Assembly: GCA_037379345.1 (NCBI GenBank)
Contig: CM074511.1
Span: 12,400,001 to 12,464,000 of the forward strand
Length of the DNA stretch: 64,000 nucleotides
Source: Perna viridis
Taxonomy: Eukaryota
Reading direction: 5' to 3'
Below are positions 2,218 through 38,700 of the stretch, piece after piece (position 1 is the first letter of the stretch; each line of letters begins with the position of its first letter). Under the pieces are notes generated by a model that was given only the letters and a program-made list of their open reading frames with translations, was not told where the DNA came from and searched no databases. The translations under genes and the position numbers were made by a program.

Positions 2218-2606
2218 TATGTGTGACAAAAGTCCTTTCTGTATTTAGATTAGTATTTTTGAGATTACTGCATTTAACCTTCCACTAAATCAAGCAAATC
2301 AAGAACAGTAACTCTTGCAAAGTGTCAATTTTATACACAATCAATATGATTTTTATTGCAAAAGTGCAAGAACCAAATGAAAAACAGTGACTGGTTATGT
2401 GATCAGCAACTGTTTCTGAACAAGAAGTAAAAGATCATACAGTAATTTAATGATATACAAGTCTGATTTTGATAAAGACTAATACTTAATTGGTATCCAA
2501 GATGGCTTTTAGATATCAATTGGTATCTAAGATGTTTTTGATATTAATAAGTATCCAGGATATTATTTATTGGTTAAATGTATTCCTGGAAAAAGTTGAT
2601 TAGATC

Positions 2607-3821: not shown

Positions 3822-4189
3822 AAGGAAGACATATAAAATAATAGTCAACGTTTAATTTGGATACTGACAATATCGTGAAATATCTAAACGAGCATGTGAG
3901 TGATGTTCCACATGATATTGTCAGTATCAAAATTGAAAGCAACTATTATTATGTTTACCAGTAATCAAATAATTGCATTTTTGATCATTATAATGTACTA
4001 CATTTGTACTAGCAAAAAATTAAGTAATGTGTTTACAAACTATCGGTGTCTGATATCAATTTCATTCAAAACTAAAAAAAAGGTGTAATGATGTTAAAAT
4101 TTTGACAGACATTTTAGAATATCTTGTCAAGCATGAGAGATAGAAAAATATCTGTCAACAATATTAAAGGAAAAATTGATAAACACCTT

Positions 4190-4336
4190 AGCTCGTTTAC
4201 TTTTGTTACTTCGTACTTATTATTTTGGTTATTTTATATTCTTTGTTGTGTGTGCCTGTTTTCCATGTCTGGTCTTCGTCCCTGGATTATATTCTTTTGA
4301 TTTCCACTAAAATCTTGGTACCCTTGATAACTCTTT
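4190..4336 (+). repeat. Degenerate copy of the same dispersed repeat
   Basis: gcctgttttccatgtctggtcttcgtccctggattatattcttttgatt...cccttgataactcttt. Confidence 0.7.
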
Positions 4337-11700: not shown

Positions 11701-14700
11701 TTCTAATTTCAATACAGAAACATTGACAGAGATATTCAACAGTGCCAATGGTTCTGATCATTCTATGCACAAATACATGCGTAACAAACTGTATCTTCTA
11801 TCTATGACTTAAGATCTTTCAAATTCATGGCTCTAAGGCAATTTTTCATGAAAACTAATGAAGGAGGAAGGGAAGCACTCCCTTTTACCTTTGTATTGTC
11901 CTAAAAAAAGAAATGAATGTGTTTTTTTCATTGTTTATGAAGGAGGTCTTATTTCCTTTTTATTTTGTTAATTGATAAGGCAATTAAAATGAATAATTAG
12001 GAACCCTTGAAATAGACAAGGAAAGGCCAAAGAATCAAGTCAAAAACACATATCATCTAATAATTATTCTCAAAGTTAAATTTATACATGTATCCCATAA
12101 CCAAAATGACAGAATCTTCTAAACTAAAAGTAAACAATCCTAAACATATAAAAATATACCAGTACATATAGATAATTAAAGTCCCACCTAATCATAGTCA
12201 TAAAAAGTCTATTTAAAATTTTCATGATGCACCCTTGCCATGCAGAAGCAAGAAAACAACTGTTTCAAATTGACCCAAAACATAAATTGTCCCACTGGTT
12301 GTTGTAACATTGAGGAAATCTTACCAATAAACTGATCTGATGGAGTGGCATGTATACTTCCTTTGTTTAATATCTGCATAATCTTCTTGACAAATTCAGG
12401 TGGCATTGAACCAGCATGAGATAAAATATCATCTCGGATCAACTGAACAACCTGAAAACAGAAATGCAACCAGTTTCTATAAATATCATGGAATCTGTCC
12501 ATACAGATATACATAACACTATACTGCATGAAAAAATTGCTTTTGGTTTTATAAAATAAGTGTATAAGCTGACTGTCTAAGGTTTATTCAGAACAAATTA
12601 TGTATGCAGTTTTATTATAGTAGTTCCTTTGTCAGACTGGAATGTTTTTCCCTCAATTTAGTAAATAAGAAGATAATCCTATTCTTAGGTGGTATAATAT
12701 TTACATGTCACAAGCAAATTTAAAGAAAATTGTCAAAGGGAGATAATGCAAATGAATTATCTCCCTTACACCTTGCAAGAATTATGTCAAAAAATTTTGC
12801 CATACTTTTTATAATAGATCACTGTTTTAAAAGTTTTTTTTTTAATTCCCAACCATAATTACTTTTATAACGAACAAAAAGCAAATGATTACACTACTGA
12901 GGAATATGAAAACAAACTTTTGACTAATAACCATCTGCATAAATCTTAAATGAATGTATATTATATGTAAACTTGACCTACCTTACAATCAATGGCTTCA
13001 TCTCTCTGGAAGTCTTCTACAGATAATGTTGGTAATGATGGACTGAAATAATTAGATAGATGAGCTGTTGATTCTTAAAATTTTTTATCAGTTCTCACTA
13101 AAGTACCAATCCATATAAACTTTAGAAACTGAGGATGGTAGAGGTGATACAACATATTGAATACGAAGCTCTATACTTACACCATATTCTAACATAAATT
13201 AATAGTCATATCTGTATACAGATCTGTATTCTGAAGAAAACCACATCATTCATCTCCCTCTTAAATCAACCAAATCAAAAATGATCTCTCTTTCATATAC
13301 AATCCATAGAACCAAATGACAACTTTATCATTAGGACATCACAAAACATTTCTTTTTTTTTTATTATAAAACTTCTTACCTGTAAATGTTTTGAGTTCAT
13401 TATGAATAGTTTACCTTTTAGAAAATAGGAAATCTTCAAGGGTCTGGGCCAACTCTAACCACATTCCTTTAAATGCAGATTCTAACAAAAAAAGGTAAAC
13501 CAAAAGTGATAAGTATGAGATTACAATATAACAAAGACATTTGGTAACTCTTAACAGGTGACACTTACTCCTAATTTTTCCCTTTCCTTTTTTGTCTACC
13601 CCGGACTTGACTTTTTATGAGCAACTCGGCAGGTGTTTCTAGAAAAGCAGATGACGCTTAACCTACTGGTACACCTGGTCCATGCTCCCAGTTTTTAGTG
13701 GAGTCTGAGTTGCTCATTTGCTTTTGTTACTTTGTATGTATGATTTTAGTTACTTTATGTTCTTAGTTGTTTATGTCTGTTTTCCATGTCTGGTCTTTGT
13801 CCCAGGATTACATTCTTTTGATTATCGCTATAACCTTAGTTCCCTTGATGACTCTTTTCTCAATGTTTAAATAAAATTGATTTTTAGCAATATGTTGCTC
13901 TCACATTTTCGCTCCAGTGCCACAAAACTTTAAAATTAATGTGTGAAAACTTTTTTTAACAGTTTTTAATGTCATTAATTTCAAATACTTTTATTAGAGT
14001 TACCATGAAATTAAAGAATATTATCTGACATAATTTATTTTATAACTTTTATGTTGGCCGGGGCCTGGTTTAACTCAAGTCTTTCTGTATTGTGTCCCAC
14101 ATTTACAATGCCAAGAGTATTTTCCGTGTAATTATTTGTTCAACGTGATCTTGAATTTTTTCATTCTTAAAAAACACACCTCATTGACCCAATGCATTTA
14201 GAATGAAATTTAGTTGTGAGTTGATAGGTGTAAAGGCAGATCATTAGTTATCTGTCACTTGCAGAGCTTTTCTCAGAATTATTGAAAGTGCACTCTGAGT
14301 TTAGAGTACTACTATTTACAGATTAAGTTTGGTTCCAATTGGTCAAGTAGTTTCAGGGGAGAAGAGTTTTGAAAAATTGTTAACGACTAAAATTTGATTT
14401 ATCTGTATTTTATACAAGCATTTTATCGTAGGAAAAGAGACAGAATAATCTGCAATACTAGAACTAAAAAAAAGAATAAAAGAAAAGTGAGAAAAAGCAA
14501 ACTTCAAAATTTGAATTGGTAGAAAAATGGTCTAGAAAATGTAAATTTTGTCATCAACAAAACTTGATACAAATTGTAAAGGTGAATGGGCCTTTCATTC
14601 TTACAGGAACTTTTATGTTTCATTTTATTGAAGTCCATACCATGTCTCCTGGCAACAGGAAGTCCTAAAGTCAGTATGTTTAGTAGTGAGTTAATGACTA

Positions 14701-17700
14701 ACATCCATGTTGAAGGTGAAGGACAACTGTACTTGTAGCTCAAGGGAAGTCTAAAAGTCTGAAAATAGAAAAGTATGTTGGTTATTTCTAGGTGTTACAT
14801 TTGTACGTTTCATCTTACAACAACCATGGTATGGTCTTGAAGCATTTCTATCCAACAAATGGCCTTGAGAACATATAAGGATCACAGCATATAATGTCAA
14901 AGCAATTAAATCAATGAGTACGGTGATAGTTTTTTTTTACTTTCTTGAGCTTTATCCTCGAAAATATGGTTTCAACCTGACCATCCCACTCATTGAATTC
15001 TTTCTTTCCTAATTTTAACATATGAGTAAAAAAAAAATAAATTCACTTCACATGAATATGTGGGAGTTGTGTATATATTTAGAATTTATTCAAGACAATA
15101 AGTATAAAAACCAAATCATCTAACAAGCCCCAGTTAATATAGACATTTATCTATCACGTAGTGCAACTATGATTCAAATCAAATATTTTTTTCAATAATA
15201 ATCAATTCAAACTCCACAACTATTCTGGTTATCTGATCACTATTCACTACATTCAAATAAAACTGACCACATAATGTACTGAAGGAGTATTATCAAGCAT
15301 TAAATTATAGATAAGTTGGTCGTGCATATAGTAAGATACACACGACAGAGCGACCTTGACTGGTCAGGATAGGTTACTTTATACAGTTACTTGACCATCA
15401 TTACACCACGAAGTGTCAACGTTAAATCACTTGGTATAAGATAGTACATGTACTACTTGTAGATAAAATATCACCTCAATTGAGTGTGTATTGCTCAGAT
15501 CAAAGGGGGGTTTGTGTATTGGCTAGATCAAGATGATTTCACTGTTTATTGTAGACACTCTTTGAGATGAAGTCTCATAAAATATTTTTCCCATGGATTT
15601 GTATGATGTCAAATAGTCATCATATGAAAGATGAGCATTTTAATATAAGCTATTTCAAACAAGAAATTCCAGTTGGAAAAAGTTAAATTACCAAATAAAA
15701 CCCATACATCCAGTACTCATGTAACTATGATTTTTTTTTTAATTGGAAATAACTTTCTATCACCATTTAAATATAGAAATATTGATTTGAACTTAAAGGA
15801 AGAACTCATATTTTTCTTAAAATTCATGAATAGTTAATTTCTAGCAACAATATAATACATAGTATCCAATAAGTTATAGCTATGATTAACCTTTTTATTT
15901 GTAATAATAGTAAAAAAATTCATCAGGAATGATGAGATTGGTGGAACAAAGTTAGAAAAGCCAAAACATCCATCATCTACAATCAACTAATGATTTACTT
16001 CATGTAAAAGAACAATGTAGCAATATTGCTGTATACAATATAAAAAAATATGATTTTCTAAGAAAGGCTCTTGAAGGAGGTGTTTGAATTTCTCAAAATT
16101 ACTGGAAAATATAGAATGGAGTGTAGTAAGAAATTATTTTTTTAAAAAAAGAGAGAAAATTAAAGATTCTTTTTTTTTCAGCACCATATGCAGTACATGT
16201 GTATTAAATCAATAGATAACTGTAGGAAAATGTTAGTGGCTATCATGATGACCAGTACTGTCAATCAATGGTTCCCTGCAGGGCATTGTAATACATCTAC
16301 CAGTCTACAGGCAGTACAAAACTTCCTATATCCATAGATAGTACAATGTTTTCATTGTAGCTCCACTAATCGTTGTATGTTTGTATATGAGTCAACTGCT
16401 TTGAGTTTGAGCTTCAAACAGATTTTAATGTATGTTTACACTTTATGAGTCAATATTTCCACAAATTCACAATCATGGCTAGAAAAGCATGAATTAGTTA
16501 CTGAAAATTATTTTACTTTTTCAATCATATTCCACATTCAATTTAATTCATAGAATAAAGAAAATTTCTCGATGTTAGAATGGATTTAAAATATCAATAA
16601 TTAAAAATTTTTTTTTAATTCTTAGATTTAAAGAATCTCTAAGACTCCAATGAAATGATTGGATAATGTAAATACATTTTTAATCAAGAGATCTCCCAAA
16701 ACGCAAAAAAAAAAAAAAAGATGTCAGATTTCCAAAATATATGTCCAAAAACTGTACAAAGTATATTAAAAGCTTTGGATAGTTCCGGTTGTTTAAATGC
16801 CAAGGTAACTGTGAATTATCTGGATATGAATAAATACAATTTTCAATGTTTTAACAAAAGATAAAATTTAGGTGAAAATCCAGGTAATTCCTTTTTCTCA
16901 ACTGACCACAATGAAATTTGGTAGGTCAGTGAGACCACTAATTTGACATTCAATTCTTATTACATTAAAGGACACTAGCTATTGAAATTGGAAGATTTAT
17001 TGCCAATTACCTTTTCTGAAATAGACTCTTTCTAATTTTATCTGTTATTGTCAAACCTGACTTTGATGTTGGAGTTTTTCTCATTATAAACATATTTACA
17101 CAGTACAGATTTAATTCTGTTTTTCCACATTCCAATGGGCAGTTAGGTTAGTATGTCTTAACATCTAGTCCAGTTATTGACCAGTGGCCCACACAAGTCA
17201 ACCACAACAATTTTAATGCAAAAAAGGGTGCAATTTTAAAGTCAAAATGGTGAAGTTATAGAACTATAATGACCCTTTCTTTTTCAGAACTCTAGCATTT
17301 ATTCCTCCCTATCAATTCTTTTTCCAACATAAATTAAATAACCCACACCAGAAAAGACAGTAGAAAGTTGACCACAAAAAATGGAAAAGAACAATAGATA
17401 AATGATCCATTCTGAGACTAACTGTTATCTATCTAACTGTTTTCCTTGTTTGCCCATGTATTAAACAGTGTGGCAGCTAGTCAGACTACATGCACCTACA
17501 CAAACCACAAACATCACATGCACAGTTTGAGATCTTTTTATTGGATTTTATTTTATCCGGACAAATGTTTTAATGCAGTTACATGTATCAACATTGTCCA
17601 GTTGCCCACACACCAACTGGTATCAAACCTCAAATATGCTCTGTACAATGTTAATGAATCTGCTGTACATGGGATTGTCTTTGATGTTACCAGAAATAAA

Positions 17701-20700
17701 TAATTGTAAAGTTGATTAAAGATTCTTCCTATGTAATTTTTGGCTTTTTACAACCTTGAAATAGTCCAGATGATGAAAGTACATGTATAATAAGAAGATA
17801 TTATACCTCAATGTTCATACACCTCAATTACAGTATCCATGCAGTGATCAAAATTTAAAATGCAAATTTTGCTGGACTGAACCAAAACTATAAGACATCA
17901 CCCAAATATTGGCAAAATATATTGCAGCATAAAAATATAAGGACTATGAATTTATACAGATTAAAACCCAAACACATGACCAAAATGTAAAAACAGGAAA
18001 GAGAGAAAATCATTATATGTAGACAACAAAATAAAATATAATTACTTTATAAAAACAGAGAAAAGGAATACAGGACTCACAAAAAAAAATAAAGCACCTG
18101 CAATTTGAAGTTCCTTTTCAGAACAAGCAAGTTCACTGTAATATTCATCATGTCATTACAAACAAAATACCAGGATTGTTAGAGCAGTGGTTGCCATGCT
18201 GTCCATCTTATTTCTATCCTCTCATTACAGAGGTGTTAACAAGATGACAAATTTAATACCCCTTCCTCAAATAAAATCACTGTATTAATTTAACACCTCA
18301 ACTGGAAACTAATAAACTCTATTAGAAGACACGCTTCAGTATTTTTATTAACTACCAGAAGTTCATAATTGGGATATGAGATAGATGCTTATCAATTAAT
18401 ATCAAGACATGGGTGCATCTGATTACTTAGCTAGGCCAAACAAAACAGATTTTAGATGATTAGGTAATGTGTAAAAATATTCTAATATAACAGTAAATTA
18501 AAGCAATGTGGTAGTTTGTTTTTGTCAATAAATACCAAGTTTCATCTGAGAATACTATGAAGTTTCTAACAGACACAAACTTCAAGGGTCCTCTATCAGT
18601 CCCATTTTTTTTCTTTCTGTACACAGAATCAAATAATGTAGAGTTTCATAACATGTTTTTAAAGAAAATTTAAGAGATACAAATATTTTTAAAATTAAAT
18701 TTTAATGGTTTCTCAAATAGCACATAGTTTTAGACAATTCTAGAGAATTACATACTTAAATCAGCAGATTCCACAACTAGATTCCTGTGGCCTATTCTAA
18801 TGATCACCCATGGCAGATGACCTCAGCAGTGGTCTCCCCTTGGTGGGTCATTAAATTGATATCAGTAGATATCAGTCAAACATCCTCACTGTCCAGTAGG
18901 TCCAGGGTTTAATTATCATCCCAGATGGTGGCAAGTCTGGTCATCTTGGTTTTTTTTAACCCCTCCCACATTTTTCTGGGATTGGAGAGGCAGAGGTCAT
19001 GACTTCAAGTTGTCATATCATTCTCTGATTGATTGTGATTTAAGAAGGAAATAAAGCCATGAGGTCTGAGGTAAGAAGTTTATGACTGTGCCACCTAAAT
19101 ATTGAGGTTATGTTAGGATATTCAAAATGAGGTAAGATAATGTAATCTTTAAAGAAATTAAGTAGGCTGAAGTTTGAATGTACACAATCTGAGATAGAGA
19201 AACCAATTAACTGTTCTGGTCATTACACATGAATTTGGTTGGTTGATCTGAAGAATTCCTATATCCTAGGAAACATTCAGAAATAGAAAATCAAAGACTG
19301 AAGTCTTCAAAGTTGCTAATCGTCAAATATTCTATGCAACTAATTTTGGCTTGCTTTCAACATCTGAAATGGCACGAATGCCATTTGCTGTAAAATGTGG
19401 TGACTTCCGCTACTCTTTCATAACTGTGATGACCCGAATGTTTTTCAATCAAAACAACCTGGAAGGGCGGGTAATGTTTTTGTTGCACACACACATATAT
19501 ATATATTCCCAACGATGTTAGAACTGTTAAATTTCCGATGCAAATTTTTGGTCGTTCCCTCCACCAGACTCAAACTTGTACCGCTGTGACATCTATGGCA
19601 ACACAGCCTGCACAAAGTCCAGCTAGGCTATATAAAAATATAGCTTTCGCTGGCTGGGTCATTCCTCCTCATAGGATTAATCTAGGGTTTTAACTAAGTG
19701 CATGATGTATGGTAGTATGGGACAGCTCATTTAGATGTTATTATATAGGATAGAGGATCAAATTAATGATACATTTCACAACAAATCAATATTATACAAA
19801 CATCAGTCGTCACATTCTGAGACGTTTGTATATATATAGCCTAGATGGTCTAAGGCGCTGGACTTAGTACAGGCGATGTTGCCATAGATGTTACAGCGGT
19901 ACGAGTTCTAGTCCCGCAGAGGGAACGAACAAAAATTTGCTTCGCAAATTTGACAGTTCTAACATTGTTGGGAATTTTTCATAACCTTTTATATATACAT
20001 ATGTAATATTACATTAAGTTCAATGCTAACCGATCATTTCATCTTTTAATAAAAACTTCCCATTCTCATGGACATACTAGCAAAAAACCCATGTAGAACA
20101 CATATGTATGATCTTTAAGAGGTACATTTTGATCTCGTATAAACTAGACTTGATGGTAAACACGACATCGATCAGCAGCATGTGGTGTAGTAAAATATAA
20201 TTATGCAAATCATATGCAAATGTAAAGTACTGGAATTACGAGTGTGATTTAAAAATCTTTAGGACAATATGGATAAAACCTTCACTCCCTACACCTCCAA
20301 ATCATATTCTGGTAAAGTACTGTGTACTATTACTAGTGGAGAAGTCCTTATTTGTTGTAAAAATTTTGTGTTGATTATGTCATTTTTTTCATAGCTTTTT
20401 GTTTCCCCATCAAAAAACTTGGAATCTGAGATTTAGTCTTCACTCATTGACTTGTTTTCATTAATGTACTTTATCCATTTGGATTCATAGTTCCTTCACA
20501 GAATGAATGTGTAAATTAATCATTATTTATCAAAGGTGGGGTTGTGACAAACCAAGAAAATTGAATTTGACTAACTGATTTCATATAGCTGTGTTGAAAT
20601 GTGGAAACTGCTTTGATGAAAGAATAACTGATAATCAAGGATTCCTGATAATCAAGGATTCCTGATAATCAAGGATTCCTGATAATCAAGGATTCCTGAT

Positions 20701-23700
20701 AATCAAGGATTCCTGACAATCAAGGATTCCTGATAATCAAGGATTCCTGATAATCAAGGATTCCTGAAAGTTGTCAAGTAAAGGGTTGTCTTAAAAAATC
20801 AGTCAGAAAAAAAAACAAAAAAACATTTGAATATAACCAAAAGCAAACATAAAGATTGCATTGACAGCATTAGATACATGTACATGTACGTTTATCAGTC
20901 CGCTTTCATTTATTCAATTACATTAATCTAATTTTGTAACAAGAAAATCAAAGACTAAGGATTAATATATTAATTATTGCTAATGAAATCAGCATCAGAC
21001 ATGGATGTATGTTTTATTGATCACCAAATATTACATGGACAGACCAGATGGTTAGTCTGATGATTGTCTCTAGGGAATACAGGCCTACAACCTGACAATG
21101 CTACATGTCCAGAAAATGCTGCAGTATTTCTTTTATTGCAACTTATTTATAATTACAAACTATCCATTCTTTCTAAATGTAGTTTACAGGGATGAGATAG
21201 GAGGAACAATATGGAAGTGAAAATAACCCAAAACTGAAGGAAATATACAGTAGAATGAATTGAAATTGTAAAGAGTTAAAATCTGTGAAGCTGCAGAAAA
21301 AAATCACATTTCTGACTTGACCAAAAAAAAACAGAAACTTACAACAGAATCAAAAAGAATGGCCACTATAATACTTAATTTCTTTTATCTTTTCTGATGC
21401 ATACCTGAATAGACTAAAGCATTAATGTGCTTCTTATGAAAAAATATTGTAATGTTGCTTAAATTCTGACCTGGAAATGTAATTTTTTTCTCTCTTCTTA
21501 CTGAAAGTTACATGTCTAAAATGAATGAACTTTGACTATGACAGACCTATATAACCTGAATATTCCGGCATGAAAATGAGAACTTTGACTATGACAGACC
21601 TATATAACCTGAACATTCCGGCATGAAAATAAAAACTTTGACTATGACAGACCTATATAACCTGAACATTCTGGCATGAAAATAAAAACTTTGACTATGA
21701 CAGACCTACATAACCTGAATATTCCGGCATGAAAATAAGAAACAAAACATTAAATTACTAGGTTTAGGAACATAATACTTTAAAAAAAAAAAGAGAGAAA
21801 TTCATTTAATTTTTTTTTTTAAGACAAGATATAACTTGCAAAAAAAAATAAATTATTTAAGCTGTGTGCTAATTATAGGTTTACAGATCCCTTATATAGA
21901 TACTTTCCAAGGCCATTCACCCTTAATTACATATTTCCTACAAGTAAGGGACCCCCATAGGGCAATTTATGGAACAATGAACTATAAATTTATAAAATAT
22001 AAGCTTTTAAAGTTCAAGAACCGTTTGGTCCCTTTAAAAGATTATCCGCATTGAAGAGAAATTGTACCTTCTTCTATAACAGTTATATAAGAAGAGATAA
22101 TCTGGTACATGTGAAAAACTTGATAACAACCATGGCCTGTTAACGTTATTGTACAATTGTTTAAATCCACACGTCACCGATTTTTCAGTAAAAATACAGG
22201 ATTTAAAGATTAACTGTACTATGAGTAGATTTGTAAATAGAAATCCTGGCCAATATGACATTCATTCATGTTTTCTGATTAATAAATGAAAACCTGTTGG
22301 GATTTAAGCTATACTTTCAATACACTCCTGGTGTTATGTAAGGTTACATAAGTTATATAAAGAATTAAGAATAGTTTATAACATGGTCTGGACAAACAAG
22401 AATAATTACAGCAAATTCCTAGTTATACTCATGACGGCAAAAGTCTGTATTTAAGTATCAGATTTGAAAAGCTTGTTTTGAAATCGTCAGGTGTTTTAGT
22501 AATATTTTTTCCACATGAGTAAGTCTATAATTATGAAAGCAAATTAAGTGATAAGAGGTATGCCTTTTGAATACAAATTTAAAAAAAGGGGGTTATACAG
22601 TATCTAAGTTTTCTACTGAAACAATTTCCCAATCAATCCAGATTGTCATTATACCCTCTTTTGATAACCTATTAAAAACTGACTTATTTATTTTATTTGT
22701 CCTAAAAATTGTTTCTACAAAACCAAATAGTCCAAAAAATAGCACTTTAAAGGAGATTTTTTTTAAAGAAAAAGAAAACAGTACCAACTAAAGTCTTTTA
22801 TTCTGTAAAGGATAAAAGTCAGGATCAGTTTGTTAACTAGTACCTTCTAATTATAAAGAGTTCACCAGAAAACAGATTTTTAAAAAAATCAAATGTTTAT
22901 TCTGATAAACTACTAAATAAATGCTGAAACTTCAAGATTTCTTTCAAAATCGTTTGAATAGATCACTGATTAATTCATACTTCCACCAATAAGCTCTCAC
23001 TGTTGATTTAACCTCATTCTGATAAAGTTCTTAATTATTAAATAAAAATGTAAAAAAAAAAAATAGTCTGAATAACATTAATTTTGTAATGGATAAAAAT
23101 TAAGCATGTGGCAAAAGCAAACACTGCACACAAGATCATACATACAAAAAATAATTCATACACACAAAACATAAATACTTTTTTGCATACCTATTTCAAA
23201 GTAGCCAACCTTATTCCAATAAGCAAATTTAGAATGAAATAATTGTTACATTGTTATAGTCGAAAACAAAAAGTTTTGAAAATACAACTCTTGACACTTA
23301 AATAGAACAATTATTTCTGAATGATAGTTCCTGCCAACAAATACACAAAATTTAAAATTGGGTCTCTGTAATGGTATCAAAATCATAGCAATGAAATTTT
23401 CATAAACCCCACTACACAAAATTTAAATACATCTCTGTAACATCATCAAATTCATGATAACACACCTAACCCTAAATACTGAGAATTTAAATAGAACCAA
23501 CATGTAACATCCAGAAACACATGGTAACATTAAATTTCTGATCAAACATTATCTTTGTAAGATTATTTCATCGTGACCTTAAACCCAAGGTCAGTGGCTG
23601 AACAACAATGATCAGGTGACATAACTCTGTACAATACTCTGGTTGCATCATGTGTTGTCATTTTAATTCACAGAACAAGTTGTTTCCTTGTAATATATTG

Positions 23701-26700
23701 TAATGGATTCCAATACACAATTTTTTGAGGACAAACAAAAGAGGCAAATCAATGGGAAATGGTAATTTGATAAATTTGTATGAATTTGAAAAAGTTGAAA
23801 TACAAATTTTGAAGAATTTTAAATATGTGAGAAACAACTAAATAAAAAAAACTTAAAATTTATCTAACCAGCATACATTTTACACAATAAAATAAATCAA
23901 TGAAAATAATGACAACTAATTTTCATTTGAAATGAAATATGTTATAATAGTAAACTTGGATATTTTAATGTACTCCTGATCATATGAAACATATAACATA
24001 TATCAGAATTCAAATTTCTTATCAACAAAAGAAAAACAAAATTTCTTTCATTTGAAATCACTTTAATTTAAAACATTAAGATTACCAAAGTATAAAATAA
24101 AATATAAAAAACATAATAAATATTATATGTCTACCCCCAAAACTGAAGGTATTACTGTATAAAGTTTGAAATAAATGAAATCAATGGAGAAGAAAAATAT
24201 AAAAGAACTAAAAAAAACCTATATAGTACACCCCTAATAAAAACAAGCATTAAAAATACATATTCTAATACATATATTAGTATTTATCCCCAAAATCAGT
24301 TTTGAATGTCCCCGAGGGAAGGAAGTAGAATAGCTGTCAAATGTTCATGTCAACTGGACCTTGGTCATCAGTCACAGTCACAAAGGTACTTCCCAGTCTA
24401 TACTTATTTTTAAGTAAGAGAACTTAAAACCTCTCTGTAGACAACTCAGGTGACCAGTAGATAGATGTAATACTTGACAATTTGGATCTAATGTCTTATC
24501 ATACAGAATAATTGTTGGTGTCTTATTGCAAAACTTTGTGCAAGGTAAAGTTACAATGGTTTACTTACTGGAATTATATCTGTTTGTTTACATTTTTTAC
24601 TAATATATCTTTTTTTTTAAATTTGAATGTATGATAATTTTTCATTATGAGTTATAGACAAAAACAAAGTTTTGAAATAAAACTTTACACAATTTAAAGC
24701 AATACTATTTTTACAGGTGTTAAATCGACATTTTTTTCCCAGAAAAATATAATAATCACTTTTAGAATTTGTATTATTTGAAAAAGAACATGTTTTTTTT
24801 GGCTTTCATGCTTAAGTTGTCTCATTATACAATACTGAGATTGAACAACATTGTATGTCTTTAATTCAGATTTTAGATAGATCTAAATTTAAGCAAAATT
24901 TTCAAGTTCATACGATTTTTTTTAAGGAACAAAAAGTGACAAATTTCTATTACTTATTTTAATTATATGAACATAAAACATGACACTTATAGGGACTCAT
25001 ACAAATTGTTTATATAGAGCAATTAACTTAATTATCACTCAGATTAATTAACATTCATGTCAAGAAAATAAAAATTCCAAGTGACATTTTTACACAACTG
25101 ACAAATTCATAAAATTTCAAAGATGGTGTCAAATTTCTTGTTTATAGCTGCAGGTTATTTATTTTAAAAGTTGTGGGCTATTTTGGATAAATGAAATTTG
25201 AGAAAACAATGTTGACACAACCAGTTTCCTTGTTCTGGGTTTTAAAGCTACTGGAAAAATTCTTAAGAAATATAATCTATAAAGAATATTAAAAAATAAA
25301 GCTTGCAGAAAAGACAAACATATAAATAAAAACTTTTCAGTATAAATATTCTGTTCGTCTTTTAATAAGATATTTCTACTTTGAAAGACAACACAAAAAA
25401 TGTTTGTTAATTTTTTCATAATTACTTAATTGAAAGATTTCCAAAAAAATCTATTAAAATTTAATTATTTTTTATCAGATAATACACAATGAATTAATCC
25501 CTTAAAAATGACCTTCTCTCAGTGATTTTCATTTTCATAAAAAATATTTACAAATCCCAAAAATTACCACAGGTAAAAACACTCAAGCCCTAACAGGTAT
25601 AAGATCAAATGAGTTTTCCTTTAATGGTATTATTGTTGTTGGTTAATTAACAAAGTTTTGCTGCTATGGTTAAATAGTCACATGGTTCAATAAATTATAA
25701 ATAATCAACTAAGTTGAAAGGTCAAATAGGGAAATACTCAAATTTGATTGGTTGATTCATGGACTTGTAAAGTTTGTGTAATATTGACTGGTCAGGGAGA
25801 AATAGGTGGACATCTAAATGGACAAGCTAGTGAGATAAGTGTAGGTCACTGACATTTTGAACATTTTAAAAAGATGCTTTAGAAAATTATGTAATAGAGG
25901 AGGAATTGCTGCATTCTAGATAAATAAAGGTAAATATGAACAATACACTAGCCATGTGGTTCTGTTTATGTTTTTGTTGATGGGCCAGTTTTGTCCAGAA
26001 TGAAGTTGTTTACATTTGGCAAGGAACTATAGGTGTGTGACTCAATATTGAATAATGGTGGACATAACCTAAGTACACTGTAAACACCTTGAATATTATA
26101 AAGGCATTTGGAAATAAATAATTATAAAAACTTCAGGTAAACAAATATGGTCAGTTTCAAGAATTGGTACAAATTGTTGTGATGATGTAAACATTTTGGG
26201 TTAAATATATAGGTTAATTATTAAAATGGACAGAGTTGTTTTGATTATTCATTTTGATACAGGAGATTGTACCTGTTAATATTAACAGCAGTAAGAAAGT
26301 AAATAGTTATAGGGAAAAAATGAAATACAAACACTTTCTAATAATGGAAATAACTTATGCTTATATATTGCCTTGTATGCTACCTACATGTACATTGTAA
26401 ACATGTATGTGTTTGATATTAATTATCTTTTTTTAAATACATGTGCATGTATCTATATTATTATCTTTTTTTACTCTACATGTACATGTATCTAAAACAG
26501 ACCTGCATTACAAAAGGGGGAACAGGGGAGGGTGTAATAAAAAGTTTAAAAACAAGTATTTTAACAGTTACTTTATTCAGCATAATATTGAATAAATTAA
26601 ATTATTTATTTTGAGTTAAATCATAATAATTTAAGAAATCATAACTTTGGGTTGTACATAATTTTGCATGGTTTTTAAACTTACATGTATAACATACCAC

Positions 26701-29700
26701 ACGAACCAACACAAAAACATCAATTTCAATAATCTTTTAAATATGACTCCAAAACAATCCATTCCAAAAGGAAAATAAAACTTAATTACTAATCCTGTAT
26801 GAAAGAAAATAGTCAATATTTTTTAGTAAGCTTTAATCCTGGCTCTTTGTACATATTGGTCAAAATTTTCTGGTGATTATTTTAACATTAAAACTACAAG
26901 TACATTTGCACTGTAAACTGATAGTCAACATAACAAATATGAAATATGTAACATTTACTAAAAGTACATGTACATGAACTACATGTATCTATTTTCTTCT
27001 TTATGTTTACACCTTCTCATTAGTAAGGATGTGCTGATGAAAAAACTGACCTCATAATTTTCATGACAATAGAATGAACAATTTTTTTGGAATTCTCATT
27101 TATTGTTTTTGTTTTTATGATGCTTCTCTTTCATGTTTTATCACACCATATAATTCAGATTCTACCACTCCTTTTTTTTATCTTGACTTTTCTTGTAGAT
27201 CTTGCACAACTGCCCAATATGGGAATTACATGTATACAATTAAATATCAAATGAATCTTCAACAAAAAGGGACATTGCTTATTTTAATAAATGAGAGCTT
27301 TAGGTTTCTTAACACATCTGTCATACACACATTATGTGACATACAGTTATTTATTGTCACTCTCTCCAGACTTTAAATGAATAGGGTTGTTGTGAATATG
27401 AAAAATGTACAGAGGAAGGTAAAACTATACAATGTACCTACAATGTACAATATACAAAATAAATATGGAGTCATTCTTCCATACTGCTATTAAAAAAAAG
27501 TTTCCTGTACAAAATATATACCCAACAGACTACTTAAATATCTTGAAAAGAAATCATTCATCCAACTTTCTGGTTCCATCATTTATGATATGAACAAATC
27601 CTGACTAATTCCAAATATACAGGTGTATTGAGTCAGACTTAAAACAGCAGATAAGCAAGTTGTGACCTCCACTGCCCTTGCAACTTCAAAATAGACGAAA
27701 AAGACAAATATATCACAAAGCCTCTTCATATTCATTTATATGCTGGATGAATTGCATGTATCCTCCAAATGGAAAATTGAGTGCAAAGAAACAATAATAC
27801 CAACACCCCCTCCCTTTGAATGGAAGGATTTTGACTGGAAAATATTGGAACAAATGCTTTATTGGTCTATTGGACAAATTGGTGAAAAGTAACTTTTACA
27901 ATAAGATGACTTGACAACTTTTCAATCTTGAATGATTTGACCCATTATTTTGAAGAAAGGTTTGACCATATTTTATTGATACTATGCACAGTAACTTGTA
28001 TAAAACTAGGATAATAATAGGGGAAACCAAATAGGGGAGAAGCAGTAAAGAATTGAATTATAGCTTTCTGTATTGTAAAACTTTGCCATTCTGACAACAA
28101 CAGGTTTAACAAGTATCAAAGGATAGCTTGATAGATAAATCTGGTGGTGTTTTAATGACATCTACCTTCATTTACCTTTGGCTGAATGGCCCTCAATCAA
28201 GGGGATTAACTCACAAAGGTGGTCCAGTTAACTCCCTTTTCAAGAGAACAATAAGAAATTGACACCTACCCTGGAAACAGCCCTGGGGTTATTGTTAAAT
28301 GTCAAATATTTTGTGGGATAATTACTAGGATTAATAAAAGAGATTTTTACTTTTTTGTGTAGAATGACATGAATTGTTAACAATACATTCTATATCAAAT
28401 AGTAAAACATGTTCTAACGATAGAGGGCAAGAAGAAAGAAAAACATGACAAATATGTGTTAAAAGTCTGTCATGTGAAAATGCAATTTACATTAGTAAGA
28501 CTTAAAGATTTTATATGTACATGTATTTTCAATCAAATCCTTATATGTAAAAGAAAATATATTGACATATATTTCAAAGCAAATGTATATGGAAAGAACT
28601 GTCCTTCCATCTAATTCTTCAAAGGAAGTTTATGTTCTTTGACATTAAAAAATCATGATCTAGTATTCATACAGATACATTTGTATATTAAACATTCAGA
28701 ACATCCTCATGGACATGTGACATGGCTAGCCAAAGCTGAAATAACAAGTCTTCATTCCTCAGGCCATAATCCATGGAAGACAAACAGTTAATAGGATTAT
28801 TCTTCATCAACAGTAAACCCATGATCCACCCTCAATTTATTTCATGATTGATTGCAATTAAAGTAAATGATTGCCTTATTCAAGGTATCATCTAGGCGTA
28901 TGCCATATTTTTCCATAAGCTGCTTTTGAAATACGTATGTAGTCATACCAATTTGATCTAAAGAAATCAAAATCACAATTAAGAACCAATTAATGTTGCT
29001 ATAAACAGTTTACAAACTTATTTTCAACCACAATTAACCATCAGCAATCATATTTTATTTGTGTAATAAGAACTTTGACTGAAACAAAAATCTAATTACA
29101 GATAATAAGGATTAAAAAAATTGTCAATGTGATTAATAGTGATACAGGATTAGGACGTTTCACATATAAAATCAGGATGCACATCAAACTTCTGATCTTT
29201 TTCCATAAATGAACAAGCCTGTGATATAATCCTAAAGGACATAGTTACAATACACTTTGCTAATGCTTTAACTGGTAAGTTGGGATGTTGTAAAAATTTT
29301 TGTTGTTACTTTCTATAAATTTTACCAAAACAGTAGGTATACAAAATTAAGCTTATTGCAACATTTAGTATTGTTTTTATTATTGTGAAATTAAAAAAAA
29401 AACAATTTATACATCCTCTTCCTTAACAAGCTTAGCTAAAACAAATATAACAATAAAGTTTCAGATAGGAAATTTGGAAGTACATTGTATTACTATCTGC
29501 AATGAATTACCAATACAAATTAACCATACTAATATCTTCTATTCATGACATAGTACTTCCTGCCATAACTAGTTTGAATGATAAGTTCAGGTATAAACAA
29601 CTTCCATTTGTTGTTTTTAAGACAATTTTTTTTAAAGTAAATTCTATATTGACACTACACTTTGGAAAGTCAGTAACATAAAAAAGCATCTTATTTGAAC

Positions 29701-32700
29701 TACAGACAATTGCTTCCCCATCATTATGGAAATACACAAAAATGTCTGTTGCTGACACGTATCCATATACAGCAGCTGTTGGCTGCTTTATAAAAAAATA
29801 AAGATGGCCATGTACCGTTTTACTACCAGCATTACCATAGTCTCTTTCCTTGTACAAATGTAAATTTATCAAAAAATGAACAATTGAGTTAGTGTATGCT
29901 GAAAAACATGCTAATTTAATAATAGGCATTTCATAAATTCAATTTTTTTTCACTATGGTATATTTCTGTTTCAGGGATTTTAATCTTTCACCTGGAATCC
30001 ATCACAGATCGTAAGGAGAATAAATAAATCATACACTGATATTACACATACTAAGTAAGGTCAATAATTACTGTGTGTGTTCATTAAATATCAAACTGGA
30101 GTCCACATTTGCAATGCAGGATCCCTACTCTATGATGCATCGAGACGATAGATTTTTCAAGCCTTATAACCAACCATCTTCAAGTTCTTCAAGATTTTCC
30201 AACATGTCAGCATCTTCCTCATCATACTATGGAATGCATTATCCATCTCACACCATTACACAGAGTGACTTGAGTGGATCATTAGACTTCTCACAATTTC
30301 CAGCCGGTGTGGAGGGTTTAATGACATCGTCACCAACCACACACACAATGCCGAACCCTATACCGGCACATTCTTCCAACAACATGTCAACCTTACCAAC
30401 AGATAGTTTGTCGCCAGACTCATCAAATAATCCTCCAACAACCTTATCTCTATCACATAATCACCATTCCTCCAGTGGTTCTCCAACAATGGATGTTTTA
30501 GATGTTTTAAATTCTCATAGTTCTAGTCCCATTGATGATAAGACAAGTATTAAAAAGAAGGAGACTGATTTTAATACAAATACAGAACTTTCATCACCAT
30601 CATCAACAACAAGCAATCACTCATCACAACATGATTCAAACAATGCTGAATGTGATGGTGAAGGTGACAATAACATGCCTCCAAAGAAAAGGCAAAACTC
30701 AAGTCAGGATTCCCAAAGAGACAGTGCTTATTGGGAAAAACGAAAGAAAAATAACGAATCTGCAAAGAGGTCAAGAGAAGCTAGAAGGATGAAGGAGGAA
30801 CAAATAGCATTAAGGGTAGTATACCTTGAGCAGGAAAATTTGCAACTTCGTACTGAAGTGTCTCTATTGAAAGGGGAGATTGAAAAACTGAGATGCATGT
30901 TGTACAATCCATGAGAATGGACTTCATCAAGAACTTGAGATAAATTCTGTGTTCAGATATCAGTGTTCAAAAGGCAACTGTGTATTTTATTCTGTCTCAA
31001 TGGCAACAATGGAAAAACAACTCAGGGTCATAAATCAGGGTTTACTGAACTGTGATATGAAATTTCTCAGGGATGTCAGTCACAATGAACTTTCATTCTA
31101 AATCATAGAATGAAAAAAAAAACATGAAATGTTTGTTACAAATTATACATTATTGTACAGAAAATATATTTATTGATTGTGTATTAGTGCTGTACGAGAA
31201 GTTTCCACGACCATCTGATATTAAACAGGGTTATATCCTTTTTATAGCAGTATTCACTACATTTGACCAGGCAGTTTTACTACATCAAAAAAAATAATTC
31301 TTGAAATTTATTAAGACTACAGAAGAATTTTTGATAAGAAACCTATCCAAATTGGGAAATTTACTCCTTAAAAAATGAGAATAGAATATTTTTTCCCTGT
31401 AGTTTCAAAACAAAAGAAAAAAACCCAAACTAGTAACATCTACATGTGGACTGGCTCAAAGTAAAGATTGATACATTTTGTTCACCAATATATAAAGTAC
31501 CAAATCTGCAATACAATATATCTCAGCCTGGTCAAATGAAAACAACTGTCATATGGACATTTATACATGCTGAAAGGCAAAAAGGGTAACCATTTTGTTG
31601 TGATTTTTAATAGAGGATTTTTTTAATTGTTAAAAACCAGTTTTTTTCTATTGAATTGGAACCCGGTAACTTGTTTGAATGTGACATTTTAGCAATTGTT
31701 TGCAACTTGTTGTGTACCATTTTATTTTGTACAGATTCAATTTTTTATTTACAAATACTCCAATAACTTTCAAGTTTACTCATATGCATGTTTCTGCAAT
31801 AGTCAAATATTTCGGATGGTCTTATTCTACAGAAGTCACTGAAACAGGTAATCAGCTGTAAAGTCTTTGTACAATGTATCTTTGTAAAAAGGACTATTTT
31901 ACAGTCTTAAAAATTATTTGAAATCTTTAGAATGTTAAAATTAATGCTAATTCATGCCATCCTGGTTTTTTTATTGAATATGAATCATACAGTTACATCC
32001 ATTATAAACATGGATGATACTTACAATTATTTTATTCAAATATAATTGTGAATCGTTATCTTAAAAACTTTATATCAGTTGATATTTTATACAATACTCA
32101 AATTCAAAAAACTAGAATATGACTTATAACAAGTATAGATGTATAATCATTTTGCCATTACCATGCCAACCATTTGTTTATACTAAGTACCCCGGTGTAA
32201 AATAGTATTATGTAAATGCTATGTAAAGGTGTGTATTCACACCAATTTGTTCAGCAATGTTTGTGATTACACATTTTTAAAAAAAAACAATAATAAATAT
32301 GCAATAAATCAAATGAAAATCAGAGGGTGTCATTTTCCTGCATCTTAAGAAATAAAATAGTGTACTCCAATTCATATTCCCTGACCTTTGACCGTAATTA
32401 ACTATCATACAACTACAAAAAAACATTGTCTTTTAACTCTAAGGTACACAAAATCACAGCATATAGTCCCTCAAATTTCATGGAAGAAACCTTTCTGATT
32501 GTACACAATACCCTTGAATGGGACTTTATGAAGGGGTCTGAATAGCAGAACATGACCATTACAGACAGAATATGAAGTACTACAGGCAAAAAAATGCTAT
32601 GCAACTCTAAAACTTCAGATTAATGACTTGATGGAACAACAGTGGGACCATCATATTTCAGAAAACTACAACATAATAAATATCAGGTATTTTTAGTAAA

Positions 32701-35700
32701 ATCTGACTTGTTCCATTAACAATTAAAATATACCTTCAGGTTATAAATGTATATGTTTGTACATGTACATGCAAAGTCATAGCAAAACTGATCCCTCATG
32801 ACAACAGTAGTCATTCATAACTGATAAAGAACTTTTTTTTTTACAATGAACCTGGTAACTGGCCTCTATAACAAGGTCGGTTATAAACGGATTGCCAGAT
32901 ATGTTATTATTGAGACATTTACACAAATCGTTATAACTTAATCATAAAAACACACAAGTTGAATATACATGTATATTTATGGATAAAACTGCACCTAATG
33001 ATCCATAATGATATAATACAGGAAGGGTCATATAGTGTATGGGTCGTTATACAATGGACATTAACTAGATGCACTGTCCAAGAAACAAATAGTCATGTTT
33101 CAAGTATAAACCCAATCAAAAGTCAGGCAATGGCTGACTTGATCTGAAAATTATTCTATGAGTCTTTAGGCACTATAAATACAGTGCATATTAATTTTTT
33201 TTTAAAATAGTTATGGAGACAAAATCTTTCATGGTACATGGTATTAGTCTGAATTTCAAGCTACTGGTACTTGTATTTAAGGCATCTAGAGTTACTTATC
33301 TTACAATTAACCAATTAACATTTACAATGTTTTTTTTTTCAACAGAAAAGTCCATTATATAGCAATATCATTTACATGTAACATGAGCATTTATGGAAGT
33401 TTAAAGAACTCAAAAAACGTTCAGATATAAAAATGAAGTTATACCACTGTGATATTACACAATATGTGCCAGTTTACTAGATGTACATGTATTACTTTCT
33501 CAGTCCACATTCTTTATGGCTATGTGAAAATATTTCATATGCAAAACAGAAGATCTCCTGAGACTGGCATAATTTCATCTTCACAGCTTATAATCAATGG
33601 TCAGTAGCAACAGTTAACCCAATACTGTTGAGTACATTTGTACTGCAGCATATATTTCACAGATACAAAGAGAGATAACTCAGTTTCAAATATTGAATCA
33701 TGAAAAGAAATTCTGATCCATTAGGGTTATCTCTCTTGTCATATAATAAGGTGGCCAGATTAAAAATGAGAGGTTATGTAAAGTGACAAAGACAGTTTAA
33801 TAAATATATCTTATGATTCACAGAAGTCATGCCAATATATTTGAAAACCCAATAATATTCTCACCAATAACTTGCATCTGTAGAACTGCATACAGAAAGA
33901 CATGACTCTTATCAATTCGATTAAACATTATAGTGGCACTAGGATACCAAAATTGAACACCATGGTGGCATGGGAACATCCAGGTTAAACACTACGGCAG
34001 CATGAAAACACCCATATAATTCACTCCAGTAGCATGAGAATGTCCAGACTAAATATTGTAGCATGAGAACACCCAGATTAGAAAGTACCAGTAGTTGTTT
34101 TCCCCTGCTAATATTGCCTAAATTTCTATGCTTAACATATGAAGAACACCTTTTTATTCTCCAAAAAGAATGGTTTAAGTCATTTGGCTATAATGTGTCC
34201 ATAGCAAGAGACCCAATTTATGAAGATTTCCAATATTCTTTTAAAGAAACACCATAACCCCCATCCCCCCAAAAAAAAATAACAAAAAAAAAAACCCCAA
34301 AAAAACAAAGCACCTTTTATTAGTTAAGTTTGTTCTAGATGTGTTAGGGATGCTGTTTGAAATATAAATAGATTGGAAGTGTTAGGAACTGACATGATTC
34401 ACTGTAATACGGTTGTTTCTTTTTGTAATCTTTTTATACATAAAATATACGACTTGAAAACAGGAACTTTATGGTACCTGAAATTAATACTTTTTTCCAT
34501 TATAGGAGAGCCAGTGATGAGTTGGCTGTAAGAAAAGGGGGATGCAGTACAGTCAATCCTGACTAAAGTGATCTTCCAGGGGAGATTACATTCATTTTCA
34601 TATACATAAGACACACGGTCTTAGTATACAGGTTTCTTTTACATGGGATTCACTAAATAGGGATATATATCCTTTTGACAGCTATTTAACCGTCCGTGCG
34701 AGACCCGACAAAGTGGTAAAGGACGTTAAAGAGTAATCAAGGTTATAGCGGTAATCAAAAGAATGTAATCCAGGGACAAAGACCAGACATGGAAAACAGA
34801 CATACACAACAAAGAACATAAAGTAACTAAAATCATACATACAAAGTGACAAAAGTAAATGAGCAACTCGGACTCCACTAAAAACTGGGAGCATGGACCA
34901 GGTGCACCGGTAGGGTAAGCGTGCTCTTAGTAGTAGCAGTTATTGAACTTGAATATTACAAGAGTGACAAACGTTGATCCCTGGTGAATAATTACCTTTA
35001 AAATATGCTCCAGTATATGACCATTGATGACAGCCTGTTGTTTGGCAGTCACCCTGTATAGATCTACCACCATCTCGACACATTTCTCAGAAAATGGCAC
35101 AAAATTCATGGTTACCCAATCAACCTGTTGATATAGTGTATAATAGTAATAGACAAGTTCAGATGGTCAAGTAGTTTTTGGCTTAAAATATTAGGAAGTC
35201 AAAAAGATTTTAGTGTAAGTTGTTTTTTTTTCCAGAGAAACTCTTGATAAGTAATGATTTTAACATTTTTTCAACCACAAAAGAAGTAATTAAATTATTT
35301 CACCGTAATATGAAATTATTTCAATGTATGCATTTTGGTATTGAAATTTTACTTTAAAACAGCCAAAATTGTGCAATAATTTTCTAAAAGAAGAGTTTAA
35401 CATTCTTACATAATTGTGGTAACTTTTGGAGCAATGTTTTTGGTTTTTTGAGTTGCTTTTTTGTTTTTGTTTCTTTGTACAAGTTATTTTGTTTTTTTCA
35501 TATTCCTGACTGTGTGTCTGTTTTCCTTGTCTGGTCTTTATTCTTTATTATTTTGTTTTCTGCTTTTATCTTGGTTCCCTTGATTACTCTTTCAAATCTA
35601 TTCTTGTTTTATTGATTCCTTTTAAGTATGGCAAGTTCAGCCTCCTCTTTGTTCAGCTAACTGAATACATAATGTTTAGTCATCCAATAAGCTCACACAT

Positions 35701-38700
35701 TATGAAAGGCCAAATTGTCTAAGTTTTGTCATCAAACTTAATCTATTTTGAACATTTGGTTATATATCACTATATCTACCTACCGATGGTCCTTTGACAG
35801 TACCAAATGCCTTAGCTTCTATCTGTCCAAACTTTGGTACCCTGACACCATACTCTACATATGTTAACAACTGATGGTATATATCTGGGTACATAGACTG
35901 CATTTGTTCTGGACCAGCATTTACTGCCTGTAAAATAATCAACATTGTAATGATGAAACCTATCTTTAACAAAAAAAAGCATATCATTCAGTGAATTGTA
36001 AATTGATATATTCTAACTACTCAGCTCAGCATATGAATCATCATTAATCAATGGCTTTTAATTAAAAAAAAAAAACAACATTGCCTTACACTGAACTAAA
36101 GTGAAAACACTAATAGGACAAATTTTCACTACCATTTAAAACAGAGTTAGTAGTATAAACTAATGGTAAAAAAATACTGGCAACCCCTTGCCATTAAAGA
36201 GACGTTCTAAGACCTTATGCTTTGACCTTGAAAATCAATAGAATATCCTCAGTACTACATATTTTCTAAGTCTGGGATGCAATCTACTGGAGGATTTTGA
36301 TTCTTGGAGGGATAAAGGAATGAGAGATGGAATGACTCATACTATCCTTACTTTACCTTCAGCAGCAAGGAGATAGCAAGCTTGGAACAAGTATATTTAG
36401 ACTATGTTATGTCTTTCTAGAGTCTAGTTTACTTTTGTATAAATTTTAATATTTTTTGCTTCATACTTCCTATTTTCCCTGCTGGTAATACAAATGTATT
36501 TTGTAGTTGCTATGTACATGTTATTCCACAGAAAACATTTCTGATTCAGTCTTCAGATAAATTATTAGGTAACTGCTGGACATTTGGTTCAGCTGATCAG
36601 CAAATTTACAGAACAGGACCTAAACCTTCCAAGGGACCTTGATAAAATGACTATAGTTCATGTATTTTTCAAATTATAATTTGTAGAGCTGTTGTGGACT
36701 GCATAAAAATATCTTTATGCCAATCTGCAACATTGTTTTAATCTACATACAATATATAATCTATATAGTAGAGTGTTAGTAAAATTCACCCGTGAACACA
36801 TTGAAAGGAAGTTAGAACATACAGTTAGACCCTTCATACAGTCTAACAATTCTACTATACTAACACTGTATAGCTAAATATGTACAAATATTGGAACATG
36901 ATACAAGTAAAGCCAGTGTTCAACAACATATCATTTTATTTTTTATTCTTCATGCAAAAGATCTCAAAGAATATATAGTTCTCTTGTAACTGTCAATATG
37001 GAGTTACATACAAAAAGGTAAAGAGAGTAATTCAAGCAGTCAACATTTAATCCATACCAATTATCATTGCAAACCCCAAAAAATTGGTATATAAGAGTAT
37101 ATTAAACTTCATAGTAGTAGAACAGAGAACCTGGCAAGTTGTTTTAGGAATGCATAATTTATCCATCTGGTAGAAGTTATAAAAATTACGTTGGGATGTA
37201 AAGAAAAAATATCTACCAGTTTAAATATACAAGGTTAAAAAATACTAACTAAAGTTTTATGTAATATCTTGATGACTTTTATCAAACCAATGGAATCAGC
37301 TAGAAAGAGTTGAAACAGGCAGACATGTTGATTACTAATACATGTATTATATACCCTGTCTCCACCGAAAAAAATAAAACCAAAAAAACTTGACCAGAGA
37401 GAATTAAGAATCAGTTAATAGATTAGGACAAGTAACTGTTACTGACAATGAGGTAAATTATTTTCAAATGTGCACAAGAATCTAGTCCAACTAGACCATA
37501 CACACTTCAACTGACAGAAGCAATTCACTATTGGCATCAAAACAATACACTAATTACCTTGTAAGCTGCAAACTAAATACATCGTAAAGTCATAAAATCA
37601 TAGTGAAAAAGTAGGAAAATAAAAGTAATATAAATATTATATCATGCTGATATATTTTAATGAATTCAATCAAAGATTTTGATAAATGAACTATCATTTT
37701 AAAATAAAGATGATGAATTGAGACTAGATTAAACTATAAAAAAAATACCACAAAAAAACCACAAAAATGACTTGGAAAAAATATTGATGAGAAGATCTGC
37801 ACCTTTTAATACGAATTATAAAATGGCTCATATTATGATCTTGCGCATGCACAAAGCTAGTTAAAGTGCACTGACTAGACGAAGTACTGATATATGGTTG
37901 AGGCTAAGAACCACAGGAAAATGATGGACTTCGATATTTCCACTAGTTTTTTTGTCCAATTAGTGTTCTGATTTTGTCCTTATATTGCTAACATTCTAAA
38001 CAACTAAACAACTAAACAAGAAATAAAAAAATTTGATCTGAAGCTGGCAACTGCAAATTAATGTACTGTACTGTACATCACAATAACAAGTTGTTGAATA
38101 TCACATATAATTATACTAATTATAATTTTGACTGCTCATATATAATGGTTGCTATAGAAACAAAACCAGGTTTCATGACATTGTGGCTGTATCTTTATAG
38201 CAAACATATTAATACAAATTTATGCTGTGAGTATTGATACACGGAAAAAACATCTCTCAGCCCAAACTCAATTGACAGTATGTAAGGCAAAAAAAAAAAA
38301 AAATGTAAAATATGAAATGTAAAAAGGTGAGCATGCAAATAAACATATTGCTGTGTAGTACATGCACTATGTTCATAAATGAAGAAACAAGGGTGCAACT
38401 ATTTGCCTTACCCACTTTGTGGTAGAGGCATTGATCTTTTACATTTGAGTAACTATAGTGGATCCTGTGAAGTAAAACAAGGGGATGCTGTGGAGTGAAG
38501 GTAGAGGATCCTGTGGAGTGAGGGTAGGGGATTCTGTTAAGTACGTCTTAAGTGATTCTGTAGAGTAATACTAGGGGATCCTGGGAGTGAGTCTAGGGGA
38601 CCCTGTGGAGTGAGACATGAGGATCCTGTGGAGTGAGTTTAGGGGATCCTGTGGAGTGAGGCTACAGGATTCTTTGGAACGAGTCTAGGGGATCCTGTGG

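Follow-up and report, generated by a model that had tools for sequence, protein, structure and literature searches.

A ces-2-like bZIP gene nested antisense in a MON2 intron of Perna viridis, probably an old arrangement shared by distant animals

A 64,000-nucleotide stretch of the Perna viridis genome (assembly GCA_037379345.1, contig CM074511.1, positions 12,400,001 to 12,464,000 of the forward strand; hereafter the window) carries exons of the trafficking gene MON2 on its minus strand, and one phase-0 intron of this single-copy gene encloses, on the plus strand, a gene for a basic leucine zipper (bZIP) protein of the 'ces-2-like' type. Our results make it very probable that the nested gene is functional and that the arrangement is an old, inherited one, shared by distant animals. 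We infer that the pair was passed down rather than created by a recent insertion, although the nesting is not universal among the lineages that bear the orthologue.

The splice sites of the host intron, read from the sequence, are canonical, with the donor GT at 34995/34994 directly after the exon ending ...HILK and the acceptor AG at 14760/14759 just before the exon beginning TFRLP... (Table 1). The exons on either side correspond to Pfam Mon2_C positions 496-533 and 535-574, with the split falling between 533 and 535, and the 20,237 bp between them therefore represent a true phase-0 MON2 intron, as the initial annotation had proposed. With exon frames searched one at a time, the host was recognised as MON2 from colinear Mon2_C and HDS exons in single copy: all nine Mon2_C matches in the 723-Mb genome fall in this window, colinear and on the minus strand, and the HDS domain lies at 43614-43790. 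Among the mapped exons at 5.6-44.4 kb, the exon-to-exon gaps other than the host intron measure ~0.3-4 kb, roughly the 0.3-3.5 kb first given for the remaining introns; that range does not hold for the stretch between 44.4 and 64 kb, where tandem arrays are crowded and no MON2 exon is recognisable, and which therefore implies a second MON2 intron of at least 19.6 kb. The sole unassigned DCB/HUS matches, on the minus strand like MON2, lie at C1:12657860-12666335, 194-202 kb past the end of the window, and are presumed to be the N-terminal MON2 exons; if they belong to MON2, the gene seems to be ~260 kb long with several very large introns. With other large introns present, the host intron is less special in size for MON2 than its early description as an outlier had it.

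The nested gene consists of a single coding exon. Its bZIP_2 domain (Pfam PF07716) scores 59.7 bits (E 3e-16), the cut-off being 22.3, the genome search places this match at C1:12430720-12430872, and the closest solved structure is the NFIL3 bZIP (E 1e-10). A protein search returned 190 relatives, among them full-length orthologues in Mytilus (76%), scallops, oysters, Pinctada, Mercenaria and Mya, and domain-level matches in Haliotis ('ces-2-like'), Patella, Platynereis ('Ces2'), Owenia, Capitella, Ridgeia and Lineus; the names given to orthologues at source are often 'TEF-like' or 'HLF-like'. The complete antisense coding sequence first claimed for the intron is upheld by its 266-residue frame, its domain score and these full-length orthologues. 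An 18-row orthologue alignment has 54 invariant columns, the N-terminus MQDPYS is common to the bivalve orthologues, and the coding sequence is unbroken in the window and at five loci from other assemblies (L013, L014, L015, L019 and L025). Relative to the contig of a mytilid relative (L013), nonsynonymous divergence (dN) is 0.154 over 257 codons, synonymous divergence (dS) being saturated and yielding no dN/dS figure. Judged from its coding sequence, the nested gene is under purifying selection. Both the coding sequence and the probable 3' end (to ~32.36 kb) lie inside the host intron, between its two canonical splice sites. In L027 (1837-1935 / 2441-2575) and also in L028, an intron of ~500 bp cuts the bZIP basic region (...AKRS / RDARR...).

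The age of the arrangement was addressed at 21 loci bearing bZIP matches, 20 from a profile scan of metagenome contigs and one (L033) from genome bins, which were tested against the minus-strand open frames of the window, Pfam and single-exon hidden Markov models. MON2 exons on the strand opposite to the bZIP orthologue were found at 4 of the 21 (L019, L020, L025 and L027), representing three organisms; the check for the bZIP gene in the orthologous MON2 intron of other animals, proposed in the initial annotation, thus came out positive in three organisms besides Perna (L019/L020, L025 and L027). The most complete case is L019, in which the bZIP open reading frame (3189-3659, plus strand) is accompanied by MON2 exon homologues at 4515-4390, 4108-3953, 2313-2194 (Mon2_C 535-574, E 1.4e-11), 714-604 (Mon2_C 615-657) and 106-5. 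Its host intron (2314-3955; 1,642 bp, GT-AG, phase 0) is bounded by ...TIIQ| and |SLNVP and is identical in position and phase to that of the window, the counterpart of the TFRLP... exon beginning at the very same Mon2_C position, 535. L020, assembled separately from the same organism or one near to it, also has a homologue of the ...HILK exon and repeats the adjacency of bZIP and exon at ~95% protein identity. In L025, nine MON2 open frames of the window are matched at 42-76% identity (10 listed pieces), and the last MON2 exon, homologous to the ...HILK exon, ends ...HVIK|gt at 9079 (Mon2_C 488-535, Pfam E 5.9e-11), with its donor 771 bp from the stop of a 362-residue bZIP frame on the other strand; the next MON2 exon is absent from the remaining 7.2 kb, and the part upstream of the last matched exon yields no exon that could serve as a probe for the distant 5' portion of MON2. 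The N-terminus of the L025 protein (MLSILPF...DRPFKAYP) is nearer to annelid and nemertean rows than to mollusc ones, a likeness that may hint at its source group. In L027, the bZIP is followed 1.7 kb away, on its 3' side, by a homologue of the ...HILK exon (tblastn E 3.8e-6, Pfam E 0.027) that is closely like that of L019, L019 and L027 being nearer to each other than to the window. In the window and in all four contigs alike, the bZIP is close to the intron donor, and the larger part of the intron is on its 5' side (15,355 of 20,237 bp in the window, 875 of 1,642 bp in L019 and more than 7.2 kb in L025).

The family of the nested gene was resolved with a tree of 68 bZIP domains over 70 columns, names being those given at source. 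The input comprised 48 named sequences out of 265 proteins, seven single-frame metagenome open reading frames, the open frames of the own-genome loci L001-L012, and L031; 3 of 71 domain matches were dropped (L002, which is the window gene itself, and P0258 and L012, with fewer than 50 residues matched), and L027 and L028, with their intron-split bZIP, were left out. Many forks remain unresolved because there are just 70 columns. The nested gene sits in a 31-row 'ces-2-like' clade (support 93/99) that also holds all lophotrochozoan orthologues, rotifers, Trichuris, Trichinella, 'ces-2-like' proteins of ticks and mites, and the metagenome loci L016, L018, L019, L023, L024 and L025, and that bears a signature of two motifs of 10 and 20 residues (letters not shown). 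One long-branch row aside, it is the only own-genome member of this clade. Outside it, insect giant, mollusc 'giant-like' and the own-genome L001 and L006 form a polytomy, fish TEF (Sander TEFb) clusters with the own-genome L005/L010, NFIL3 clusters with the own-genome L007/L009, and Acrobeloides P0208, the sole rhabditid-like nematode row, likewise falls outside.

As placed by this tree, the nested gene is a member of the 'ces-2-like' protostome clade of the PAR/CES-2/Giant/NFIL3 bZIPs. Of its first description as CES-2/Giant-like, the superfamily and the ces-2-like affinity stand, but orthology to Giant does not, because separate giant-like genes are present on C2 at 3.03 and 4.77 Mb (C2:3027308 and C2:4768938) and the insect giant and mollusc giant-like rows lie outside the clade. 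Membership of the PAR subfamily (HLF/TEF/DBP) was rejected as well, given the grouping of TEFb with L005/L010 and a 10-residue basic-region motif (letters not shown) that contrasts with KNNVAAKRSR. CES-2 acts in cell-death specification. Proteins named 'ces-2-like' (NCBI names in Haliotis, Ornithodoros and Tropilaelaps) and Platynereis Ces2 (W5XJE8) share with the nested gene the bZIP_2 domain, both signature motifs and the clade; the comparison with Caenorhabditis elegans CES-2 is made through these 'ces-2-like' named proteins, in a tree without C. elegans CES-2 and Drosophila Giant. Giant and the mollusc 'giant-like' proteins appear sister-like, sharing an extended basic region and a C-terminal KLRCMLYN with the nested clade, but they differ in occupying rows of their own outside it. 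The PAR bZIPs (TEF/HLF/DBP) and NFIL3/E4BP4 belong to the same Pfam family and are placed apart from the nested gene. Two further observations concern other bZIP genes. L031 (9491-11773) and the own-genome L007 (C1:59608990-59610288) are NFIL3-like frames with two bZIP domains each, the second domains pairing together with support 100/96. On C5, the divergent bZIP_2 genes L003 and L008 (8298927-8299085, minus strand, and 8301444-8301602, plus strand), which served as the outgroup of the tree, stand head to head within 2.5 kb.

RNA evidence for the nested gene covers 27400-33300. The four contigs of one run (X1, whose status as RNA is a guess) all fall within 29668-32277, three of them on the gene and its 3' side (30446-31212, 31221-31605 and 31790-32277), with depth climbing toward 32277 and no coverage at 27400-29566 or 32325-33300. 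We place the 3' end near 32.3 kb because a cluster of AATAAA signals at 32292, 32303 and 32351, the end of the X1 contigs and a block aligned with L013 converge there, in keeping with the poly(A) signals noted initially; L013 aligns to the window solely at 30091-31073 and 32204-32311. In the raw reads, the first mate is plus at 27400-29566 and almost always minus at 29961-31733, which, if the library is of the usual stranded kind, corresponds to host pre-mRNA (minus strand) upstream and plus-strand RNA on the bZIP gene. Two oligo-dT metatranscriptome runs contain 12-18% of the sampled words.

Several points weigh against the reading of a functional bZIP gene kept in MON2 since a distant ancestor. 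Raw RNA reads number only 6, 8 and 6 in three runs, each sampled at 19-25%, which is thin support, and those of 27400-33300 include no splice joint, loose end or start cluster; the acceptor initially ascribed to the gene accordingly finds AG candidates at 29973 and 30119 but neither a spliced read nor a loose end in that interval. The term 'distantly related' rests on the identity of MON2 exons to those of the window, 25-52% for L019 and 42-76% for L025, in environmental contigs. No MON2 exon was found at 17 of the 21 loci; most of these are uninformative because their 3' flank measures 0-3.3 kb, against the 4.1 kb needed in the window, and some may be transcripts. L033 (JALWFW010000300.1), a complete animal ces-2-like bZIP without a MON2 exon, is likewise uninformative on the nesting with a 3' flank of ~325 bp, and L026, L029, L031 and L032 are more distant bZIPs. 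In L018, by contrast, the bZIP is preceded at 2.8 kb, on its own strand, by an exon of the CTU1-type zinc ribbon (PF16503, E 8.8e-19), a gene that lies on C6 in Perna viridis, and the nesting is probably absent from the L018 lineage; in L023, no MON2-like exon was found in flanks of 9.5 kb (5') and 2.3 kb (3'). Synteny of the presumed regulator and bystander across distant lineages is in sum kept in L019/L020, L025 and L027 and probably not in L018. Finally, why the pair was retained is something that we can only infer. As a separate observation, L033 is filed in a Polyangiaceae bin and is probably host or environmental animal DNA that was misbinned.

An assembly artefact that put the bZIP inside MON2 deserves hardly any credence: no sign of it was seen, independent assemblies of other organisms repeat the arrangement, three runs of the same organism contain 69-100% of the sampled words of 30000-31400, and the window has no N. 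Only marginally less improbable is a recent, lineage-specific insertion into a long intron, for example as a retrocopy. The intronless coding region would fit such an event, as would the origin of many nested genes from young duplicates inserted into long introns (described in the accessible text of PMC5174743), but in L019, L020, L025 and L027 the orthologue occupies the same intron, full-length orthologues extend across phyla, and the own genome holds no other member of the clade save the long-branch row. A functional coupling of the two genes, with MON2 as a bystander in a bZIP regulatory block or with antisense transcription tuning MON2 splicing or expression, is a more serious contender, yet we consider it unlikely. 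The nesting has been kept over large sequence distances, the bZIP is always placed toward the donor, the bulk of the intron being on its 5' side, and the Platynereis orthologue, 'bZIP.TF', is expressed in specific cells of the apical organ, namely crescent and putative mechanosensory cells, its function being given as not known in the accessible part of that report (PMC3939940). Conversely, the comparison with L013, whose flanks extend 0.66 kb 5' and 2.8 kb 3', reveals a single non-coding block, the poly(A) region, and nothing conserved beyond the edges of the coding sequence and the 3' end; the nesting persists in a 1.6-kb intron and was seemingly lost in L018. Somewhat more doubtful still is the broadest version, in which the nesting is spiralian-wide or older and held by function, with a bZIP control landscape built into MON2 and antisense feedback on MON2 splicing or output, and in which MON2 may host several nested regulators.

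Under the preferred reading, that of an old inherited pair, the bZIP gene would be expressed from a single coding exon, apparently with a promoter of its own inside the intron, and its transcript would be polyadenylated ~1.4 kb beyond the stop codon. The protein is predicted to bind DNA as a dimer, using a basic region and a zipper that hardly vary. Splicing removes the host intron, and the two genes would thus overlap in DNA and not in mature RNA. The pair was most likely kept passively, because any break that separates the two genes would cut MON2 and because control DNA of the bZIP would also fill the intron. The initial proposal that the intron serves as a large regulatory domain does not account for the persistence of the nesting: the L019 intron, only 1,642 bp long, still keeps it, and its maintenance is therefore not due to a large regulatory domain.

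Table 1 Features of the host intron, the nested gene and the repeats around it, in window coordinates.
Feature	Position	Strand	Details
MON2 exon beginning TFRLP..., 3' of the host intron	14641..14758	-	donor GT 14640/14639, from sequence
MON2 host intron	14759..34995	-	GT-AG, phase 0, 20,237 bp; contains the bZIP gene
Dispersed repeat resembling a miniature inverted-repeat transposable element	19288..20014		internal inverted arms 19505-19623 / 19857-19975 (pair I7); at least 183 matches genome-wide
Tandem array, 53-bp unit, 5 copies (family D14)	21475..21792		
Stretch under one X1 contig upstream of the coding sequence	29668..29927		could be 5' untranslated region, unspliced RNA or host pre-mRNA
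ces-2-like bZIP coding sequence, single coding exon, 266 residues and stop	30114..30914	+	open reading frame 30075-30914, ATG 30114
bZIP_2 domain (basic region and leucine zipper)	30720..30872	+	PF07716, residues 216-266 of the 279-residue frame
Probable 3' untranslated region, to the AATAAA cluster	30915..32356	+	X1 end 32277; L013 alignment 32204-32311
Dispersed element near the intron 5' end (pairs I2, I5)	34739..34927		inverted copies 13649-13837, 4191-4317
MON2 exon ending ...HILK, 5' of the host intron	34996..35124	-	acceptor 35126/35125, from sequence alone

The 15.3 kb upstream of the bZIP start codon appear mostly unique, as described at the outset: the 150 genome matches listed, out of 183, all fall on one element of ~0.5-0.7 kb, the dispersed repeat with inverted arms of Table 1, to which the 53-bp tandem array is to be added. 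The number of matches is a lower bound, 39 of 7,121 candidates having been scored. None of the nine further open frames in the host intron has a Pfam match (0 of 9), and no Rfam family was detected in 14000-36000. Elsewhere, minisatellites pack the introns and flanks of MON2 (2479-3954, 8393-9818, 38413-39102, 46775-49377, 59316-61249 and 61964-62710), with periods of 42, 25, 23, 46/37, 39 and 41 bp; the 25-bp array produces a strong GC skew (0.51 in 8001-10000), and a frame of 425 residues at 2578-3855 was rejected as a gene, as it is made of the 42-bp tandem array. A dispersed element of ~100-200 bp occurs in several copies and both orientations at 1-1914 and 52377-52817 (families D13, D15, D17 and D18; pairs I1, I3, I4, I6, I8-I10 and I12), and an inverted repeat (6160-6252 / 7563-7655; 93 nucleotides, 87% complementary) brackets a segment close to the MON2 3' end.

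The result opens no new mechanism. It provides a marker that can be checked precisely, the presence of a ces-2-like bZIP in the phase-0 MON2 intron at Mon2_C 533/535, and it draws attention to a poorly studied bZIP clade, set apart from Giant, PAR and NFIL3, whose domain hardly changes between nemertean and mollusc. Although nested genes are common, far fewer pairs have stayed in one and the same intron across very divergent animals. Such same-intron pairs can serve phylogeny as rare genomic characters, and they offer natural tests of whether gene order is constrained by overlap. A literature search on MON2 nesting and microsynteny found no description of a bZIP gene within MON2, in line with the initial impression that the nesting was undescribed, with the proviso that supplementary lists of microsyntenic pairs might include it.

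Nested genes as such are well documented, and among them bZIP/MON2 most probably counts as an ancient pair rather than a young insertion. Nearly 10% of Drosophila melanogaster genes are reported to lie in nested structures (PMC3814207, in its accessible text). Closest in kind are the LRRTM genes in alpha-catenin introns (PMC3933685) and 2mit in Drosophila timeless2 (PMC3786989), in which, likewise, a protein-coding gene lies wholly in a host intron and has long been kept; 2mit and timeless2 are moreover on opposite strands, as are bZIP and MON2. As far as the accessible text of these reports goes, bZIP/MON2 differs from both in its partners and in the animals in which the pair is found.

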